Positions 2,467 through 45,416 of a stretch of DNA of 64,000 nucleotides are shown piece after piece. The stretch lies in sequence record NC_019401.1. One strand, written 5' to 3'. Below the pieces are notes generated by a model. That model was not told where the DNA came from and made no database searches. It saw only the letters and a program-made list of their open reading frames with translations. Numbering within the stretch: position 1 is the first letter of the stretch; the number at the start of each line of letters is the position of its first letter. The translations under genes and the position numbers were made by a program.

Positions 2467-2475
2467 GTATTTACT
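2467..2475 (-). promoter_or_regulatory. putative late promoter GTAAATAC
   Basis: About 35 nt upstream of the 2436 start. Confidence 0.45.
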
Positions 2476-3443
2476 TAGGAGTACTACAATAACCAGTACT
2501 CCAGTACTATAGAAGAACTTATCAACTTCTCAAATATCCCCTCAATATACCCTTAGAACGCTATAGGAAACACTCAGAGAGCATATGTTTGATTCCTGTA
2601 GATAACGCTTTGCGATATCGAAAGGATTCAAACAGCCTAAAATAACGTTTACGATATGCGTCACTCTATATTATAATACTTTAAAATTATATATTATCAC
2701 TATCTTTCTAGTACTATTCAACGTATAAGATAAAAGAATATCAGTACTAATCAGTACTGACAACTATTGTTCAGTACTGTTAACCCCTTCCACTATATCT
2801 GTTCCTGAAGTCGAATGCAAACCGCACAAAAAGTACAGTAACCTTTTTTCAAAAATGATAAGATGAGGTGAGGGAAAATCTGGAAGGTACGTGAAATCAA
2901 ATACCGATCCTAAAAATTTTGGAGTACCTTCGAAAGTTTTTCTGAGATCTCAAAAGTACTCAAACGTAAAAACCAATCAGCAAAATTTCATTTGATACTT
3001 TATTTTTATTGATGATCATTACAGTACTGAACAACGATACAGTACACAGGTGGTAGGTATTATATCAGTACTTGTATATGTCAGAAAATGTAAAGAGCTT
3101 TTAAAATTATAGAATCAGCTTGACGAGAGCGGGTGGATTTAGTATTATGGATTTACACGGTGAGGGGAGGCAATTGAGCCTGGTTCTTACAAGTACTGAC
3201 ATTACTTTTGATGATGTTGGTCATGATACAATTTACCGTATCATTTTCGATCCTCTTTATTGCTTAGGAAATATTGAGTACTAAGTATATTGTAATAATT
3301 GAGTACTTTGTATAGTACTATGTAGTATGCATTTATATTTGACGGTGTACGCCAATATGAATGGATAATGCTAGTACTATACAGTTTTAATTGAGAAAAG
3401 GTACAGATACAGTAACAGTACTGTTACCCTGAATTTTGGGTGT

Positions 3444-3590
3444 ACTATCCCTATCTGCTATCGTTAGATGGATAGACTTCTGGCAGTGTAGATGGATAGA
3501 TGTTTATACGTCTGGACTGCTATCCTTCTGGATGGCTAAACGGCTAGATGGCTACCCATCTGGATGGATAGACGTTTAGACGGCTAAATG
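3444..3590. repeat. cluster of short GATGG[AC]TA repeats with partial inverted CTATC copies
   Basis: GATGGATA at 3467, 3491, 3563; GATGGCTA at 3531, 3547; related GACGGCTA near 3579; CTATC x3 at about 3446-3462. Confidence 0.75.
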
Positions 3591-3770
3591 ATTTTTTCTG
3601 TCAAAATTCCATTAGCTCCCCTTCCGCGACTGGATGGAACCAGGCAGAATCGAAAGTCGTCTTTTCGTGTTGACAGGGATATAATACCACACTGAAAAAC
3701 AATTGCAAGGGATTTTTTGCAGAAAAATAAATTTGACAAGTGATTCAGGATTATAGTACTATATAAGCAA

Positions 3771-3803
3771 GCCAGAGAAATGGCGTCGCCCACAGGGTGC
3801 GGA
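3771..3803 (+). ncRNA. two-hairpin element E1+
   Basis: TTGACA(3733)-18-TACTAT, then GCCA-GAGAAA-TGGC, GTC, GCCCACAGGGTGCGG. Confidence 0.55.
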
Positions 3804-3842
3804 GATCTGCCTATTGATATTTAAATGAATTTTGGATACAAT

Positions 3843-3875
3843 TCCGCACCCTGTGGGTCAAGGAGTTCCGCCTCC
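3843..3875 (-). ncRNA. two-hairpin element E1-
   Basis: Minus strand TTGCAT-17-CATAAT, then GGAG-GCGGAA-CTCC, TTG, ACCCACAGGGTGCGG. Confidence 0.55.
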
Positions 3876-4124
3876 ATGTAAGATATTATGCCAGTACTGC
3901 GATCATAATGCAAGTACTTTTTGTGATTTTCTTTAAAAAAGTTTCCCCTTCTATATACGTATAAAGGAAGCGTTTAGAGCGTGTCAGATCCTGGGGCTTA
4001 CAGTTTTGTACTTTATACTTTATAAAGCCGTGTAAAGCGTCCTATGCGTTCTATGTTTGCGTATGTGTATATAGAGAAGAAAAAGGCTGTTAGAAAGAAT
4101 TTTATAAAAACTTGTATAAAGTAC

Positions 4125-4152
4125 TTGCAAGGTTTTTTCGGTGTGATAGTAT
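4125..4152 (+). promoter_or_regulatory. sigma70 promoter with AGTACT overlapping -35
   Basis: TTGCAA-16-TAGTAT. Confidence 0.55.
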
Positions 4153-4256
4153 TAACCACGTCGAACAGGACAACGCTCTTTAAAAACTTGCTGGTGAATA
4201 CTTAAACATGCCTCCAGGTACTTTGAAAAAAGAATCTGAGAGAATGAAAAAAGTAC

Positions 4257-4284
4257 TTGACGGCAAGATTAGAAAGTGTAGAAT
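4257..4284 (+). promoter_or_regulatory. sigma70 promoter
   Basis: AGTAC-TTGACG-16-TAGAAT with TG extension. Confidence 0.6.
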
Positions 4285-4290
4285 GTTCAA

Positions 4291-4440
4291 TATCGAAAGG
4301 CGGCAAGGTTCGCCGGATGGTAGGAAACGGTGGCGGGGCGATTCAGTACTGCTACAGTGATAAGCGAAAAGAGCTATCACAGCGTTATAAAGGTTAACAT
4401 AACTGTTAACGTCCTATCTGCCGCCCGACGATGCTTTCTG
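4291..4440 (+). ncRNA. candidate structured small RNA
   Basis: Promoter upstream, no ORF; GGCG/CGCC, GGTAGGA/TCCTATC, GTGAT..AGC/GCT..ATCAC and GTTAAC/GTTAAC stems. Confidence 0.4.
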
Positions 4441-4582
4441 TACTGTAAAAGGTACGAAAGAAAAAAGATTCAGAAAGTTATCAAAAAGTACTTGACTGCC
4501 TGAATCGCACGATGTAAGATGTTAAGCAAGCCAGATGGCTAACCCAAAATTCAAAATTTAACTTTTAAGAAGGTATATAATC

Positions 4583-17278: not shown

Positions 17279-17285
17279 TTCAAAT

Positions 17286-17321
17286 AAAAGGTTGACTACG
17301 GTCGGCCTTTTTTGTTATACT
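17286..17321 (+). promoter_or_regulatory. terminator-promoter fusion cassette A4
   Basis: AAAAGGTTGAC-TACG-GTCGGCCTTTT; TTGACT-18-TATACT. Confidence 0.75.
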
Positions 17322-17330
17322 TCTTTCATT

Positions 17331-17362
17331 GGCAGATAAGCCGTTAGCCCATTGGGTGCATA
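17331..17362 (+). ncRNA. two-hairpin element E6
   Basis: GGC-AGATAA-GCC, GTTA, GCCCATTGGGTGC; about 55 nt identical to the E7 locus. Confidence 0.55.
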
Positions 17363-17527
17363 GTTGTATCCTTTTTAAGTACTTTCTACTTTGAAAATAT
17401 TATACAAAAACTTGTAATTTCTTCTTGCAGATTAATCTGAATTTGGTATTATATACACATCGAGACGGGGCAACGTCTTAGATAAACTAAGCGAGCGAGA
17501 AAGAAAATGCGGCGTAAATGAATTTAT

Positions 17528-17564
17528 AAAAGGAGTTGACAGCGGTTGACTCCTTTAGTATAAT
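17528..17564 (+). promoter_or_regulatory. terminator-promoter fusion cassette A5
   Basis: AAAGGAGTTGAC-AGCG-GTTGACTCCTTT; TTGACA-17-TATAAT. Confidence 0.7.
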
Positions 17565-17609
17565 CATCCCATTCAAACAAATGTAGTACTTTCTAAAAGG
17601 CATAATATC

Positions 17610-17837
17610 ATGAGAAACATCGTCGAAGTACTGTTTAACGCATCAAGAGAAGTTTCCGAAGAAGAACGCCAGGCTTCCGAAGTCATTAGCGATCTTTGCC
17701 AAAAGCATGAGCTTGTCTTACCTGAACAACTTATGGCTATGAATTACTTTTCAGGTATTGACTTCAATCTGATTGTATCAAAGGTTAGTACTCTTAACAC
17801 GCCGTTGATACCCGAAGCAATGTTTTATACACATTAA
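17610..17837 (+). CDS. hypothetical early protein
   Basis: AAGG RBS, promoter A5. Confidence 0.7.
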   Translation: MRNIVEVLFNASREVSEEERQASEVISDLCQKHELVLPEQLMAMNYFSGIDFNLIVSKVSTLNTPLIPEAMFYTH

Positions 17838-17845
17838 TAAGTAAT

Positions 17846-17882
17846 AAAAGGCTTGACACGTTCGAGCCTTTTTTGTTATACT
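17846..17882 (+). promoter_or_regulatory. terminator-promoter fusion cassette A6
   Basis: AAAAGGCTTGA..TCGAGCCTTTT; TTGACA-18-TATACT. Confidence 0.75.
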
Positions 17883-17891
17883 TCTTTCATT

Positions 17892-17922
17892 GGCAGATAA
17901 GCCGTTAGCCCATTGGGTGCAT
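17892..17922 (+). ncRNA. two-hairpin element E7
   Basis: GGC-AGATAA-GCC, GTTA, GCCCATTGGGTGC. Confidence 0.55.
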
Positions 17923-18055
17923 AATAGTACTAGTACTATAAGAAAATAAAAATATAAATTCAAACGAAAAAAAACTTGCATTCAAATAACAGTACTGGCA
18001 TAATACTTACATGGATTAGGGAATGGCCTTAATCATTTTAAGCGAGAATACTATC

Positions 18056-22134: not shown

Positions 22135-22336
22135 GTAAACACCAATTCAAGAAAATTTCGAGTACTTGTCAAATCAAATACAAGTATTCGAAAATTTAGT
22201 TTAGTGTCGAGTACTTGTATAAATTTTCGCGTATGCACCAGCGTATACATATATGCACATATAATGCGTAATATGTACTTGCATACGCCTACACATACAT
22301 GTATACTATCATTGTCAACTACAGAGGATCTATATC

Positions 22337-22531
22337 ATGAATGCACAAATTAGACTCTTAGCGAATCAAGTACTGAACAAACGTTACTTGGGCATTGAAG
22401 AAGCAATGGAGCGTATCATCGGCAAATACACTGAACAAAACGCTGATGTACACGCCGCCGTATTCAATGAGATTCAAGATATTCTGAATCCTCATGGTAC
22501 TGGTGAAGATGAAGTTTATTGCGAAAGTTAA
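22337..22531 (+). CDS. hypothetical early protein
   Basis: GAGG RBS. Confidence 0.75.
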   Translation: MNAQIRLLANQVLNKRYLGIEEAMERIIGKYTEQNADVHAAVFNEIQDILNPHGTGEDEVYCES

Positions 22532-22591
22532 TTTGACAACGCGATGTAAGTACTGATATACTTACTACACATTAATCGAGAGGGTAACAAC

Positions 22592-22768
22592 ATGGTACAG
22601 GTAGACTTAGCAGAACTCAGAACTAAATGGTACAACCTGGGGAAAGAAGGTACTGAAATCTCAGGTGATGATGCAGTACTGTTTAACTCCCTCGATCCGT
22701 GGCAAAAGCGGGAACTCCACAATGCCTACGTTGAAGGAACTACGGAAGCCCTTGCAACCGTAGCATAA
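22592..22768 (+). CDS. 58-aa hypothetical protein (paralog of 21466..21687)
   Basis: Not in ORF track. GAGG RBS; MVQVDLAELRTKWYNLGKEGTEISGDDAVLFNSLDPWQKRELHNAYVEG. Confidence 0.8.
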   Translation: MVQVDLAELRTKWYNLGKEGTEISGDDAVLFNSLDPWQKRELHNAYVEGTTEALATVA

Positions 22769-22790
22769 CCCTAACAGGCTATCGTATCAT

Positions 22791-22822
22791 AAAAGTGTTG
22801 GCAAAGTCCAGCACTTTTTTTC
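22791..22822 (+). terminator. intrinsic terminator
   Basis: AAAAGTGTTGG/CCAGCACTTTT plus T run. Confidence 0.75.
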
Positions 22823-22880
22823 GTTTTTAAGCAAATAAATTCCTTGACCTTCCCTGCGATATTTGAGAGAATACCCACAA

Positions 22881-22912
22881 GCCAGAACAAAGGCGTAGCC
22901 CACAGGGTGCAT
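22881..22912 (+). ncRNA. two-hairpin element E9+
   Basis: TTGACC promoter; GCC-AGAACAAA-GGC, GTA, GCCCACAGGGTGC. Confidence 0.55.
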
Positions 22913-22952
22913 AGGCACGTCCAAAATTCAGTACTCAAATTTTAGATAGATC

Positions 22953-22985
22953 TCCACACCCTGTGGGTCAGACCGTTACACCGGT
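22953..22985 (-). ncRNA. two-hairpin element E9-
   Basis: Minus strand TTGCAT-16-TATAAT, then ACCG-GTGTAA-CGGT, CTG, ACCCACAGGGTGTGG. Confidence 0.55.
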
Positions 22986-23167
22986 TTATGTACTTATTAT
23001 ACATCAACCACGGATCAATGCAATACCCTGGAGAAAATAAAATTATAAATTCAAACATAATATTCGCTTGAATTCTTTGTTCAGTTTGATAATATACCTA
23101 GACCAAAACAAACAACGGCAAGACTATACCGCCTAAATCGTCAGGCCGGATTATACCCAAAACCCTG

Positions 23168-26673: not shown

Positions 26674-27291
26674 ATGGGATATACAATTCAAAAGTACGAG
26701 TACTTTAAAGAAGTACTGGCAATGATTGGAACATTTGAGCAGGGTTTGTTTGGTGATTTAGAGTATAACGACCACGATGTAGTACGTTTACGTTTAGTCA
26801 GAGCCAGGGATGATCGAATGACATTTAATGCTTATGTAATTGGTCACGATTATGATTATAATATTTTCAGTTCAACGTGGTTGTATCGTGATTGTTTAAC
26901 TAACTTTACTAATTATAGTATTACTCAGCGTGAAGTACTGAGTACTACATATTACCAGTACAGGGATAATGAATTCATTGTTAAATCTCAGGATGGGTTA
27001 TTTGATTCAAAGGTATCGACGCTGCAATATCCTATACAAGAGGATGAGTACTTTCAGCAATTGACCCGAATCGATTTACCGCCGGAAGATGAGATTGAAC
27101 GTTTCATGACAGTTTCTAAAGAAATCATTTCTCGGTATCCTGAATTTGTAGGATTCACATTTCACGGTGGAACAATGATGCAAGAAATAAATGAAACGAA
27201 CCATGAAAATATGGTACAATCAGTTATGGATTGCATGAATGAGTTGGTTAAGCTTGAGATGGAACGTAAAAATGGTGGCATTTTAGAATGA
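26674..27291 (+). CDS. FQL-motif paralog family protein
   Basis: EDEYFQQLTRIDLP motif. Confidence 0.8.
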   Translation: MGYTIQKYEYFKEVLAMIGTFEQGLFGDLEYNDHDVVRLRLVRARDDRMTFNAYVIGHDYDYNIFSSTWLYRDCLTNFTNYSITQREVLSTTYYQYRDNEFIVKSQDGLFDSKVSTLQYPIQEDEYFQQLTRIDLPPEDEIERFMTVSKEIISRYPEFVGFTFHGGTMMQEINETNHENMVQSVMDCMNELVKLEMERKNGGILE

Positions 27292-34308: not shown

Positions 34309-35090
34309 TGTTTTTTAATTTCTTTTTATCATTTGAATCATTCCGTTCAGGTTTCAGTGGTTCAGCAAGTAAATCTCAAGCAACGGATGCAAATCAATAT
34401 GTCATTCCGAGGAAACAAAGAACAACATTTAATGCATTATTAGGTTCATTAGCTGCGGTTATGAATAGAGAATCACAATTTCTCTATACAAGTTATGCAA
34501 CTCGCACAGTACTAGTGAATCTTTCTGATGAATCTATGTTCCAGTTAGAGACACTTTGTGTTCCTGAGTACTGTTACTGTACTTATAACCTTGATACTAA
34601 AATTATTGGGTTCGGTAATAGTGTTCTAGAAGCATATGAAGCCACTCGTGAAGACAATATGAAAAGTGGTAATGTTGGTTACGGAGGAAAAGCTAATTAT
34701 AATTACATGATTCAGTTCTTTCCACTGAAAGAAGAAGATGAACCATTTGAATTCACTTGTCCATATGCTTTTTACGAACAAGTTCTGGCTGAATTAAAAC
34801 CATACATTAAGTATGAGAAGAACGCAATGTTCAAGAATTGCACTGATATACTTGAGCGGGAGCAACCTTTTCTTAATAAATTCTTTGAAAGTTATTATGA
34901 AGAAGGTCGTGACCGTTCTGAAAAGTACTATGGTTCGCCCATAAGAACTTATGAGTTCAAACATACTGTTAAGATGTTTATGGAAGACGATCCTGACATT
35001 CTTGAGAAGAAAGATTTTCATGAATCAGGTCTACAGTTTCTAGGTAGTTTGTGTTTTAAAATGATGCAAATGACAGATGAAACGTTTTAA
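34308..35090 (+). CDS. hypothetical protein with FQL-like motif
   Basis: DESMFQLETL motif. Confidence 0.75.
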   Translation: MFFNFFLSFESFRSGFSGSASKSQATDANQYVIPRKQRTTFNALLGSLAAVMNRESQFLYTSYATRTVLVNLSDESMFQLETLCVPEYCYCTYNLDTKIIGFGNSVLEAYEATREDNMKSGNVGYGGKANYNYMIQFFPLKEEDEPFEFTCPYAFYEQVLAELKPYIKYEKNAMFKNCTDILEREQPFLNKFFESYYEEGRDRSEKYYGSPIRTYEFKHTVKMFMEDDPDILEKKDFHESGLQFLGSLCFKMMQMTDETF

Positions 35091-35106
35091 TTTTTTATGG
35101 TATAAT
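35079..35106 (+). promoter_or_regulatory. putative phage middle promoter GAAACR-N13-TGGTATAAT
   Basis: GAAACG 35079-35084, TGGTATAAT 35098-35106. Confidence 0.6.
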
Positions 35107-35110
35107 GTAT

Positions 35111-35138
35111 AGGACAGTATGATGTACTGTCCTTTTTT
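35111..35138 (+). terminator. intrinsic terminator or 5' hairpin
   Basis: AGGACAGTA-TGATG-TACTGTCCT plus T6. Confidence 0.75.
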
Positions 35139-35139
35139 A

Positions 35140-35800
35140 ATTGAGAAAAACTCTGAATGACCTTGAAGAACAAGGATAGTTTTGAACCTGGACTGATGAA
35201 AAGTAATCGGTCAGATGAGTAGTTCATTCAGTACGAACAGCAAAAGAAACCCGTTAGAGTACTAGCAGTCATACAAACGCGACATAAGACTACGAATCAC
35301 GGCAATGCGGCTGTATAAAGCATGACAGCACTACATAAGTTCATGCCTTGATAGACATATAGGATCGCACCTACCTAATGTATAAGGGAGTTAAATTTTG
35401 CGATTGGATTTGTACAATATAGATCCGTCTAAAATTCGTGAAATTTAACAAGTACTGAAGCTGTTCATGTGGCTTTGGTACTCAGTGTAGTAAGACTACG
35501 ACCGTTGTATAGAACCGCGATAGGGAGAAACCGGACAACCCGCTTCCGCTCTTTTAAGAAATTCGTGACATGAAACTGCTATGACTATCATCGTCAGATT
35601 TGTTCTTCCCTCCCTGTGGGGGGATGAAAATGCATCAACAAATCTCGTCAGTAATAATAGTGTTAAACATATTATAGTTAAGTGAGAACGTAAATCACCG
35701 AAGAACGAAACGTCAGTTGAGTTCAAAAGTGATTTACTGGAACATCGTTAGATGTTCCTTGTATAACGAATCAGCGATGAACTGATTCCTAAAGTGAGAT
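35140..35800 (+). ncRNA. candidate large (about 650 nt) structured RNA, class unassigned
   Basis: ORF-free gap in an otherwise gene-dense block; at least 12 hand-found stems including 14-bp 35390-35403/35436-35449 and long-range 35263-35269/35575-35581; strand assumed from G-U pairs and the upstream promoter. Confidence 0.7.
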
Positions 35801-35804
35801 GTAA

Positions 35805-36329
35805 ATGAAGATCGTGTACAAATGTAAGCATACAGGTGAAGTAAGTAGTACTGTAAATTTGGATGAGTTTGAAGGGTATTGTATTAAACTGGAAAATAAT
35901 AAGCTTAGCAAGATAACAGAGTTATTATATAGCATTGTTATTGCAAAGATTGATTATCGACCTACTAAAACTACCCTAATCCATAAAATTGAATACAATG
36001 GACACGTTGAATACAGGTACAGTAACAATAAAGTACAATCATTGTACTATGAATTTGATAATAAAAAATACGGTGAATATAAAAAATTCAGTCCTTCAGG
36101 TGAACTGACTGAAAGGAAATTCTACTTTGAGAATATAGATATTACTGATGATGTTATGAATTTTATTCAGTACAATGGTGACCCTAAAGACTTTAAAGAT
36201 TATTCTTTTAAAGAAGATGAACTGTTTAATTTGATGATGAAATATGGATATTATTTCAGGTTTTGTTACGAATCAGGAAGGGATAGCACTGAGTTTGACT
36301 TTATAACAGAGTACTGTCAAAAAATATAA
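35805..36329 (+). CDS. hypothetical protein with MORN-variant-like repeats
   Basis: YSNNKVQS..KKYGEYKKFSPSGELTERKFY. Confidence 0.7.
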   Translation: MKIVYKCKHTGEVSSTVNLDEFEGYCIKLENNKLSKITELLYSIVIAKIDYRPTKTTLIHKIEYNGHVEYRYSNNKVQSLYYEFDNKKYGEYKKFSPSGELTERKFYFENIDITDDVMNFIQYNGDPKDFKDYSFKEDELFNLMMKYGYYFRFCYESGRDSTEFDFITEYCQKI

Positions 36330-43152: not shown

Positions 43153-43178
43153 AGAATGTAATAGCCTAACAAGGAGTA

Positions 43179-43418
43179 GTGATGGCTAAACCGAAGTATA
43201 AATCGAAAAAGGGCGAAGTACGAACTCCTGAAGAACATAGAAAGATACTACAAGAAATTGACGCTTTGCAGAGTGAACGCTCAAGGAAAGGGGTTCAGAA
43301 ATCAGTAAAGCGTCTCAAAAACACTTTTGGTGTCAGCAGTACTATGTACAAGAAGGAACGTAAGCCCAAAAACAAAAAACCAAAAATTTATGATTTAGGA
43401 CGATACGCACGTGAGTAA
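43179..43418 (+). CDS. hypothetical highly basic protein
   Basis: AGGAG RBS; K/R-rich. Confidence 0.75.
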   Translation: MMAKPKYKSKKGEVRTPEEHRKILQEIDALQSERSRKGVQKSVKRLKNTFGVSSTMYKKERKPKNKKPKIYDLGRYARE

Positions 43419-43635
43419 TTTAGTTACAATAACGACCGTTAAAGTACTATATAAAAATCATGAATTTTCCCTAATCCCTAAAGGAGTTGTACCATTCAAT
43501 AAACTAATTGAAATGGTAAGATATGTAAAAGAAATTGGCGACATTGCTTTTATCGTTGATGGTGATATGTACTTCGACGAAGGTGCATTCTTTAATCTAA
43601 CGATGAAGTACTGTAATGAGTACGTTATAATCTAA
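43411..43635 (+). CDS. hypothetical protein
   Basis: GTG start overlapping upstream gene. Confidence 0.6.
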   Translation: MSNLVTITTVKVLYKNHEFSLIPKGVVPFNKLIEMVRYVKEIGDIAFIVDGDMYFDEGAFFNLTMKYCNEYVII

Positions 43636-43647
43636 TCGGAGAATCCC

Positions 43648-43872
43648 ATGAAAGTAGAAATGCAACACAGCATAGTGCAAGATATGACAGTAATTAAATT
43701 TATTTCTTTAAAAGATTACTTCCGAGCACTTGACTTTTTGGATTCGAGTGGGTTAGAATGGACGCCACTAAAATATAGTTCTAAAAATGATACTGCAAGT
43801 ATTCGTTTATCAGAGAACGTTTTGAAAATTTTTAGCAATAAATTTGGGATAGGAAAATCATGCCAGTATTGA
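43648..43872 (+). CDS. hypothetical protein
   Basis: GGAG RBS. Confidence 0.7.
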   Translation: MKVEMQHSIVQDMTVIKFISLKDYFRALDFLDSSGLEWTPLKYSSKNDTASIRLSENVLKIFSNKFGIGKSCQY

Positions 43873-44783: not shown

Positions 44784-44787
44784 TAAT

Positions 44788-44816
44788 AAGGGATACTTCG
44801 GTATCCCTTCTTTTTA
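44788..44816 (+). terminator. intrinsic terminator
   Basis: AAGGGATAC-TTCG-GTATCCCTT plus T run. Confidence 0.88.
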
Positions 44817-44839
44817 ATTAAGAAAAAAAGGAGTCAATT

Positions 44840-45049
44840 ATGGCTATTAGTGTTGTTTATACAATTAAGAAAAAAGGTACATCTGAAGTGCGTGATATTA
44901 TCACCCATACTGATGAGTACTGGTTCAATTCAGGTTCATATTATGTGAATGGTGGTATTCGTACTGAACTTGAAAAAACTTATCCAGAAAGTGAGTTTGA
45001 TATTGAAGTTCAAGTATTAACACATTCTGGATCTCAATCTAATGAATAA
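44840..45049 (+). CDS. hypothetical protein
   Basis: AGGAG RBS. Confidence 0.7.
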   Translation: MAISVVYTIKKKGTSEVRDIITHTDEYWFNSGSYYVNGGIRTELEKTYPESEFDIEVQVLTHSGSQSNE

Positions 45050-45245
45050 GAATGTTTACTTATTTTATTACACTTCATATGAAATTGTCGATCATGATGA
45101 AGACGGTGCAGTATATGAAGATGTTCGATATAATTTAAGTGCATTCGTTGATTTAAAAAAAGGATTAGAGTACTACAAATCTAAGTACCCTTCTAAATCT
45201 ATACAATATGAATCCATAATAGTTATGGATTTTAACGAGGAATAA
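45042..45245 (+). CDS. hypothetical protein
   Basis: Overlapping start. Confidence 0.65.
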   Translation: MNKNVYLFYYTSYEIVDHDEDGAVYEDVRYNLSAFVDLKKGLEYYKSKYPSKSIQYESIIVMDFNEE

Positions 45246-45248
45246 ATT

Positions 45249-45416
45249 ATGGAAATCATTTTTACTGTACTTTGGTTGTTCGCGTTCATTTGGACTTTAA
45301 CAACTGCTCGCGATAATAATCGCTCAATGTTTATTTGGGGTGTAGTTGCACTTGTATTCTCCCCACTACTAGCACTAGTTTGTCTATGGTTGTTAGGTAA
45401 GAATTATGGAAACTAA
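45249..45416 (+). CDS. 55-aa membrane protein
   Basis: Not in ORF track. GAGG RBS; MEIIFTVLWLFAFIWTLTTARDNNRSMFIWGVVALVFSPLLALVCLWLLGKNYGN. Confidence 0.7.
   Translation: MEIIFTVLWLFAFIWTLTTARDNNRSMFIWGVVALVFSPLLALVCLWLLGKNYGN

Follow-up and report, generated by a model that had tools for sequence, protein, structure and literature searches.

The window analyzed here is 64,000 nucleotides (nt) of DNA from sequence record NC_019401.1, which by BLAST corresponds to positions 1–64000 of Cronobacter phage vB_CsaM_GAP32 (JN882285, Mimasvirus, 358,663 bp) with identical coordinates. Genes GAP32_066 (stop codon at 35088–90) and GAP32_067 (start at 35805) are separated by a 714-nt gap (35091–35804), in which the sole annotated feature of the GenBank record is a rho-independent terminator at 35113–35142. 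Sequence comparisons indicate that the segment 35143–35652 encodes a large non-coding RNA with pseudoknots, transcribed from the plus strand, with a lineage-specific tail extending to ~35720–35800 and a total length of roughly 510–600 bases. A first-pass annotation of the window had proposed a new or divergent large non-coding RNA at this position, and the element is indeed conserved, heavily covarying, pseudoknotted, on the plus strand and without a match in Rfam. The same annotation had described the gap as the only large one free of open reading frames (ORFs) in 39 kb, and with a threshold of 50 amino acids no other gap past 21.5 kb reaches 250 nt. It is without coding signal: each plus-strand frame has 16–21 stop codons, most indels relative to homologs have lengths not divisible by three (386 and 101 versus 100), and variability shows no 3-nt periodicity in the homolog comparison, features that speak against the decayed ORF that had been raised as an alternative. 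The RNA core is 40.7% GC, compared with 34.5% for the flanking genes.

A predicted promoter lies on the plus strand at 35077–35106 (consensus scan, 10 of 12 matches with TG), with a –35-like (A)TGAAAC(G) element at 35077–84 (TGAAAC at 35078–83) that overlaps the 3′ end of GAP32_066 and is joined by an 18-nt spacer to an extended –10, TG-g-TATAAT, at 35098–35106; transcription is predicted to start near 35111–35114. Every copy of the RNA, whether in a phage or in a bacterium, is preceded by (A/G)TG(A/G)(A/G)AC, ~17–18 nt, and then TGnTATAAT or TATACT. Consensus scanning for TG(A/G)(A/G)AC-N14-19-TGnTATAAT finds five plus-strand sites in the window (at 27192, 32360, 35078, 42920 and 58484) and none on the minus strand. 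The promoter of the RNA copies matches the TGAAACG 'divergent RpoD-like' class described for phages CBB and GAP32, a class found mainly ahead of DNA-synthesis genes (PMC5259590). For this reason the label 'middle-type promoter' given in the first-pass annotation is plausible. The intrinsic terminator of the upstream operon (35111–35139, plus strand; a 10-bp hairpin at 35111–33 plus T6, found both in the GenBank annotation and by scanning) sits between the –10 and the RNA core, and a transcript from ~35113 would thus start with the terminator hairpin. This arrangement occurs in all orthologs of this copy (copy 1 of three in GAP32, see below), in which the hairpin is kept by compensatory changes, and the hairpin is not present in copies 2 and 3.

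We gathered 93 full-length homologs, which were reduced to 46 sequences below 93% identity and aligned over 600-plus columns. A 14-nt pattern used for the first collection was too loose, with nearly all of its 120 stretches being chance matches that were removed by BLAST, and of the 80 metagenome matches to a later pattern, 29 likewise arose by chance in coding DNA rich in GC. The consensus structure, from RNAalifold together with two pseudoknots from a covariation scan, contains 110 pairs in 24 helices. Canonical pairs fill 92.4% of the cells across the 46 homologs and 110 pairs, versus 36–44% when the 3′ partners are slid by one to three columns. Both sides have changed in 70 of the 110 pairs (33–44 in the slid control), there are 816 double-change cells (113–158 in the slid control), and the covariation score is 0.457 (≤0.103 with slid partners). 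None of 500 shuffles reached the observed value on any of five covariation measures, and the collection of homologs with a covariation analysis, which the first-pass annotation had suggested as a check, therefore comes out in favor of its proposal. RNAalifold on the first set of 31 sequences gave compensatory changes in 42 of 67 pairs. Among pairs that are at least 93% canonical, G·U cells outnumber A·C cells by 225 to 15, and this excess indicates that the folded molecule is the plus-strand transcript, a reading consistent with the promoter direction and with the earlier remark that many G-U pairs favor this strand. Folded alone, the single sequence stands out only mildly, with z-scores of –1.9 (plus strand) and –0.5 (minus strand). 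Seventy-three core columns are invariant among the 46 homologs, many of them in loops and junctions (e.g. GAUGAG, ACCCGU, CGGCAAU.CGGC, GAUAGACAUAUA, UAAGGGA, GACC, AGAAAC.G......CCGCUU, CGUCA and a G-run).

The conserved core, defined by the family profile and the invariant columns, spans ~510 nt on the plus strand, from AAAAACUCUGAAUGA to CUCGUCAGUA (35143–35652). The nhmmer family profile matches 35142–35714 (E=1.8e-135), and there is a single copy within the window; five other stretches of the window lack ORFs of at least 80 amino acids (2468–4564, 17279–18022, 22135–23167, 43153–43859 and 44784–45405), and the profile has no match in any of them. The 5′ domain (35153–35231, helices 1–5 of the consensus) is closed by P1 (35153–60/35224–31), a stem found by eye in the first-pass annotation and backed by covariation in the 46 homologs, with double changes in four of six pairs. 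It encloses a variable hairpin (35161–65/35171–75) and a second hairpin (35188–98/35207–14) with the conserved loop GAAAAGUA, which corresponds to a stem previously drawn at 35191–97/35206–12. The 3′ strand of P1 falls within the loop of a 3-bp helix (35219–21/35232–34; 100% paired, two covarying pairs), forming pseudoknot 1. Helices 6–8 (35237–35346; 100%, 93% and 91% paired, respectively) follow, in which 35237–41/35310–14 encloses 35251–58/35297–302, and this in turn closes a variable insert (35259–96), in whose place most homologs have a shorter segment. Next come the invariant CACGGCAAUGCGGC and a hairpin (35320–25/35341–46) in which all six pairs covary. A highly conserved junction of invariant and near-invariant columns (35347–35389) consists of GAUAGACAUAUAGG, a small helix (35360–63/35370–73; 97% paired) and UAAGGGAG, and leads into an arm (35390–35449) that is 37–82 nt long in the homologs and too variable to align. 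In GAP32 this arm has a 14-bp stem, an inner GGAUUU/AGAUCC stem and a conserved apical motif UACAAUAUAGAUCCGUC. The 14-bp stem with its inner stem had been proposed earlier (35390–403/35436–49), and hairpin folding of the homologs gives one long hairpin in 45 of 46, with unrelated stem sequences. Island-type and copy-3-type RNAs (see below) carry an insertion that repeats the apical motif, ACAAUA(A/U)AGAUCCGUCUA (L137 8345–8385, L262 3996–4021), and the motif, being repeated, resembles a portable module for binding or docking.

The 3′ domain (35451–35574, helices 14–21) begins with a 12-bp hairpin (35451–62/35471–82), all 12 pairs of which covary; 11 bp of it (35451–61/35472–82) had been recognized previously. 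Its loop, UUCAUGU (35464–70), pairs with ACAUGAA (35568–74) to form pseudoknot 2, where all seven pairs show double changes and 99.4% of cells pair. The two strands differ together between paralogs (UUCAUGU/ACAUGAA in copy 1 versus AUUGUAU/AUACAAU in copy 2), and the pseudoknot is also recovered by an independent covariation scan. Other elements of this domain are a hairpin at 35487–90/35496–99, a helix at 35516–20/35563–67, a hairpin at 35523–27/35543–47 with the loop AAAC.G..CAACCCG (invariant in AAAC, G and CCCG), and a hairpin at 35550–52/35557–59; the helix 35516–20/35563–67 is, with 35237–41/35310–14 and 35320–25/35341–46, among those with the clearest covariation. Two shorter stems in the first-pass annotation, CCTTG/CAAGG and GCATGA/TCATGC, are likewise supported by covariation in the 46 homologs. 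Three of its pairings are not. The long-range pairing 35263–69/35575–81 has seven of seven pairs only in GAP32 and four or five of seven elsewhere, without compensation. The 5′ arm of a second long-range pairing, 35278–82/35563–67, is within the insert that most homologs lack, and in all homologs 35563–67 pairs instead with 35516–20. Lastly, a 9-bp stem (35596–604/35637–45) has all nine pairs only in GAP32. These three pairings are chance.

The 3′ end of the core (35583–35652, helix 24 and invariant columns) consists of the near-invariant CAUCGUCAG, a C-rich/G-run hairpin (35606–14/35619–27) and the near-invariant CAACAAAUCUCGUCAGUA. The G-run of this hairpin is invariant and its partner drifts between C and U, such that helix 24 is 98% paired and four of its five pairs vary only as C-G versus U-G. 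Island-type and copy-3-type RNAs have a terminator-like hairpin and U-run between CGUCAGA and the C/G hairpin. Beyond the core, copy 1 has a lineage-specific 3′ tail (35653–35804) with an AT-rich linker, three hairpins (35690–98/35729–37, 35739–46/35751–58 and 35768–74/35782–88) and then the ribosome-binding site of GAP32_067. The three hairpins, all noted in the first-pass annotation (35690–737, 35739–58 and 35768–88), are kept in the Mimasvirus and Eneladusvirus copy-1 clade, the first of them by compensatory changes, and not beyond it. A terminator scan found no intrinsic terminator downstream of 35175 in copy 1.

Rfam 15 (4227 models, including GOLLD, ROOL, OLE, raiA, 6S, RNase P, group I and II introns and RNAI) has no match in the whole window at gathering thresholds, so the search that had been recommended leaves the RNA without a family. 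At E≤10 over 34900–36000 there are only five chance matches, four of them over the promoter and terminator region, and Rfam searches of seven homolog loci, including a bacterial island and Klebsiella phage RaK2, gave nothing over the RNA. ARAGORN detected no transfer RNA (tRNA) or transfer-messenger RNA in the window or in eight homolog loci. The earlier statement that signatures of transfer-messenger RNA, RNase P and group II introns, and clear ones of group I introns, are absent thus agrees with these searches and with the absence of an interrupted gene. The latter excludes an intron: the genes on either side of copy 1 are complete and separately conserved, the element has a terminator and its own promoter in front of it, and for copy 3 the flanking genes are on the opposite strand. 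We did not find the RNA described in the literature on GAP32, PBECO4/121Q, RaK2, large non-coding RNAs of jumbo phages, GOLLD and ROOL, or screens for structured phage RNAs, and it is an uncatalogued large RNA family; the comparison with the 10,006 candidates from IMG/VR was by description only (PMC10690425).

The family extends well beyond the account in the first-pass annotation, with three copies per genome, copies in bacterial islands and the two pseudoknots. It is present in 71 records of a 50,697-record phage collection, all from the Rak2-like jumbo-phage clade only, and in many IMG/VR and metagenome contigs. No homologs were found among 72,556 plasmids (PLSDB). The copy-1 gap is 70–90% identical and ORF-free in Mimasvirus, Eneladusvirus, Asteriusvirus and the Munch/7t3/Kae01 group, in all of which the order 066–gap–067–Dam–cytidylyltransferase is constant, and Klebsiella phage RaK2 and Xanthomonas phage XaC1 have a more diverged full-length homolog. 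Family identity is 60–90% across at least four genera (Mimasvirus, Eneladusvirus, Asteriusvirus and Alcyoneusvirus) and bacterial islands. Collection scans with conserved-block patterns revealed the multi-copy state. GAP32 copy 2 (340648–341268) is between GAP32_503 and GAP32_504, and copy 3 (177436–178091, plus strand) is between a minus-strand EndoVII gene (GAP32_241) and GAP32_242, placing the paralogs at ~35 kb (copy 1), 177 kb and 341 kb, with mutual identities of 68–75%. Three copies are also present in CBB, Serratia phage BF, 121Q/PBECO4 and several uncultured contigs of 350–370 kb. These comparisons indicate that the three paralogs diverged long ago and that all three are present in every GAP32-, BF-, CBB- and 121Q-type genome examined, with at least one copy in RaK2-type phages. 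A duplicated protein partner is rejected, as the proteins flanking copies 1 and 2 (GAP32_064–069 and 500–507) have no homology between the two loci.

There are departures from this simple pattern. CBB copy 1 is a mosaic, with a 5′ part like copy 1 and a 3′ half, including both strands of pseudoknot 2, like copy 2; it groups with copy 2 in the tree (L007 1505–2061 vs L135 2617–3185), which suggests gene conversion between paralogs. In PBECO4, copy 2 (L136 2394–2988) is directly downstream of a gene annotated as an RNA polymerase sigma factor (1409–2374).

Bacterial copies are rare in E. coli (two of 5426 complete genomes), and others were found in Citrobacter amalonaticus, Silvania hatchlandensis, Enterobacter chinensis, an Enterobacteriaceae isolate and three metagenome-assembled genomes. 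In the bacterial genomes and several metagenome contigs the RNA is within a recurrent small integrative element, in the order Tyr or large Ser recombinase, RNA, convergent cI-like repressor (helix-turn-helix (HTH) plus S24 peptidase), HTH_35 regulator, 286-amino-acid protein and LprI-like protein (e.g. L141 896–6331; also L146, L145, L150, L190, L257, L259, L216 and L210). No structural genes are present in this recurrent island of Enterobacteriaceae, which could represent either a satellite or a defense island linked to Rak2-like phages. One E. coli island, adjoining ffs, lacks the repressor and has a candidate defense gene, PDC-M45A. Searches of the island proteins and GAP32_065–067 against Pfam, PHROGs, NCBIfam, PADLOC and PDB identified integrases, the cI-like repressor, HTH_35, LprI and the one candidate defense gene, and otherwise families of unknown function. 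No relatives of the island proteins were found in jumbo phages, and tblastn with the 286-amino-acid protein gave no phage match; the RNA is the only thing that islands and phages have in common. In a tree of the 46 copies, those from islands are scattered polyphyletically among those from phages, which indicates repeated exchange. Mimicry of a host RNA was considered and rejected, there being no similarity to ribosomal RNA or small RNAs across the 5426 E. coli genomes. The island of E. coli LR-29-1 has ~700 nt without annotation after the RNA (L137 8527–9230), with a weak sub-threshold Rfam match to IS102 (E=0.2).

The closest known systems are the large ornate RNAs GOLLD and ROOL of phages and prophages, which form RNA-only multimers as seen by cryo-electron microscopy (bioRxiv 10.1101/2024.12.08.627333). 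As with these, the RNA described here is a large multi-pseudoknot RNA gene of phage or prophage type without a protein partner: the sizes are similar (500–800 nt), all have many helices, pseudoknots and strongly conserved loops, and they are encoded by phages and integrated elements as free-standing genes without a conserved protein partner. However, the new RNA matches neither Rfam model and occurs in Enterobacteriaceae and their jumbo phages rather than in Lactobacillales, rumen or lake taxa. Moreover, GOLLD and ROOL are frequently adjacent to tRNA genes, whereas the new RNA is not near tRNA genes in the window or the eight loci, and it has three paralogs per genome. A second comparison is with PA5oct, a related jumbo phage, in which free-standing, highly expressed long non-coding RNAs (lncRNAs) of 236–619 nt have been proven by RNA sequencing, with ncRNA002 making up to ~5% of phage reads and ncRNA004 being weakly transcribed (PMC7318152). 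Both ncRNA002 and ncRNA004 are long ORF-free transcripts (450–620 nt), and ncRNA004 (L263 517–1135), like GAP32 copy 3, is on the plus strand between two minus-strand genes. Homology is nonetheless rejected, as there is no detectable similarity and the PA5oct lncRNAs have none of the signature motifs of the new family. The IMG/VR screen yielded 10,006 unnamed candidate structured RNAs, four of them upstream of Dam methyltransferase genes, in a comparative search of the same viral collection (PMC10690425). That set might contain fragments of the new RNA, although the paper does not mention jumbo phages, Cronobacter or multiple copies.

On balance we think it probable, if only modestly so, that this is a free-standing trans-acting ornate RNA (a scaffold, decoy or self-assembling particle) that works in the manner of GOLLD or ROOL. 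It appears to be an independent gene rather than a leader, because a promoter of its own precedes each copy, copies 1 and 2 are flanked by unrelated proteins, copy 3 on the plus strand lies between two minus-strand genes, and the next gene downstream in the islands is the convergent cI-like repressor. The RNA would be made from its TGAAAC/extended –10 promoter, of a class that also heads phage DNA-synthesis operons, and would act in trans. Its conserved loops and junctions would shape a tertiary fold, and during infection the folded RNA would either assemble with itself or bind a factor and keep it sequestered. The 73 invariant columns, the two pseudoknots and the peripheral arms of variable length are the pattern expected of such a fold. 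Since the invariant loops are the same in phages and islands, there are only three options for the partner (further molecules of the RNA, a component of the host, or one of the phage that the islands exploit), and a sequestered factor would accordingly be host-encoded or a phage protein of that kind. A stoichiometric structural role would fit because tertiary-type positions are extensively conserved and three paralogs are maintained; the copies might raise the dose or supply variants, and those in islands may play a role in the conflict of jumbo phages with their host or with mobile elements. The PA5oct lncRNAs provide a precedent for free-standing lncRNAs in jumbo phages.

Several points weigh against a GOLLD-like RNA acting in trans. 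The trans-acting mechanism is our inference only. Copies 1 and 2 and those in islands do not end in a canonical terminator, so that copy 1 could also serve as a 5′ leader for GAP32_067, and in copy 1 the terminator hairpin intervenes between promoter and core. In addition, the scattering of promoter-driven copies over the genome of a T4-related phage would be compatible with RNA-primed origins as well. We suggest with rather less assurance, and somewhat short of an even chance, that this is a new ornate RNA class with a distinct function, be it assembly as RNA only, catalysis or the sequestering of a central host factor, needed in high dose by Rak2-like phages and captured with its promoter by islands that use it to sense, parasitize or block them.

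The main rival is an RNA-primed replication origin, in which the structured transcript would form a persistent R-loop near its 3′ end and prime leading-strand synthesis, the three copies being three origins. The models are T4 oriF and oriG, with a middle promoter plus an unwinding element, and ColE1 RNA II, a folded primer of ~550 nt; an island copy would let the island, which has no rep gene, replicate by host enzymes or by the replisome of an infecting phage. Features in common with RNA II would be a promoter-driven transcript of ~550 nt and a required fold, and those in common with oriF and oriG are a phage-specific promoter class and several dispersed loci in a T4-related genome (~35, 177 and 341 kb); in none of them is a protein partner needed in cis. 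The promoter is of the class placed upstream of DNA-synthesis genes in the CBB paper, most copies lack a defined terminator, all have an AT-rich stretch after the core, and copy 3 adjoins the gp46/47 and EndoVII recombination genes. There is also the invariant G-run near the 3′ end, and G-rich RNA stabilizes R-loops in ColE1 and mitochondria. A cis-acting element would, moreover, explain why phages and islands have no protein in common. However, there is no GC-skew inflection at 35 kb, no iterons were identified, and the new RNA has no homology to RNA II, no antisense RNA I, no Rfam match of RNAI or ColE1 type and no relative among the 72,556 plasmids. Conservation of the fold is also far more extensive than in ColE1 RNA II or the T4 origins, since 73 invariant positions and two covarying pseudoknots over 500 nt exceed the known needs of a primer RNA, and we know of no such conserved RNA fold at T4 origins. 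We regard an origin as unlikely.

Catalysis by the core (self-cleavage, processing of flanking transcripts, or RNA cleavage and ligation in trans) seems improbable to us. Large ribozymes typically share the size, the pseudoknots and the abundance of invariant unpaired nucleotides, and there is no conserved protein partner, but no Rfam ribozyme family matches (group I, group II, RNase P or small self-cleavers), no gene is interrupted and so there are no exons to join, no nearby tRNA genes offer possible substrates, and no candidate reaction was identified. We give still less credence to a cis-regulatory 5′ leader, riboswitch-like or protein-binding, for GAP32_067 and the Dam/cytidylyltransferase operon. 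Copy 1 is co-oriented with GAP32_067 without an intervening terminator, the 066–gap–067–Dam–cytidylyltransferase synteny is conserved, and the three hairpins just before the ribosome-binding site are kept in the copy-1 clade; yet copies 2, 3 and those in islands have unrelated downstream genes, or none that is co-oriented, a separate sigma-70-like promoter follows copy 2, and the conserved core stops ~150 nt short of the start codon. A leader function is at best a secondary role of the copy-1 tail. That the segment is non-functional (a decayed ORF, a DNA-level repeat or a chance fold) has a negligible probability and is refuted by the covariation results. The modest single-sequence thermodynamics (z = –1.9) and the several first-pass stems that are chance would be compatible with it, but covariation is far above both controls, the G·U:A·C ratio of 225:15 is strand-asymmetric, 60–90% identity is maintained across at least four jumbo-phage genera and the bacterial islands, and stops are dense with indels not in threes.

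To our knowledge, bacteria and phages have yielded fewer than a dozen RNA classes that exceed 400 nt and are strongly conserved in structure, and the large classes that have been solved (RNase P, group I and II introns, HEARO/omega RNA, and the GOLLD and ROOL cages) each gave new biochemistry. The class described here is unusually tractable, with three deletable copies and a second natural context in chromosomal islands, and it is easy to study because it is present in coliphages; among these are 121Q and PBECO4, which are therapy candidates, and isolates propagated on K-12 MG1655 (Sharanji). If it is a new ornate class, then an RNA would be central to the conflict of jumbo phages with satellites or defense elements, and if it is an origin, then the replication origins of the largest enterobacterial phages, until now unknown, would have been located.

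Recognition of the RNA also corrects existing annotation. Short coding sequences for 'hypothetical proteins' have been annotated over RNA copies, some of them on the opposite strand, and those drawn over RNA loci are probably spurious. Examples are RaK2 ORF014w (L139 946–1599), GAP32_503A (L134 3924–4037), fHe-Yen9-04 g047/g048 (L006 1611–2092) and Kaldavass CDS0607–0609 (L004 1550–2208).

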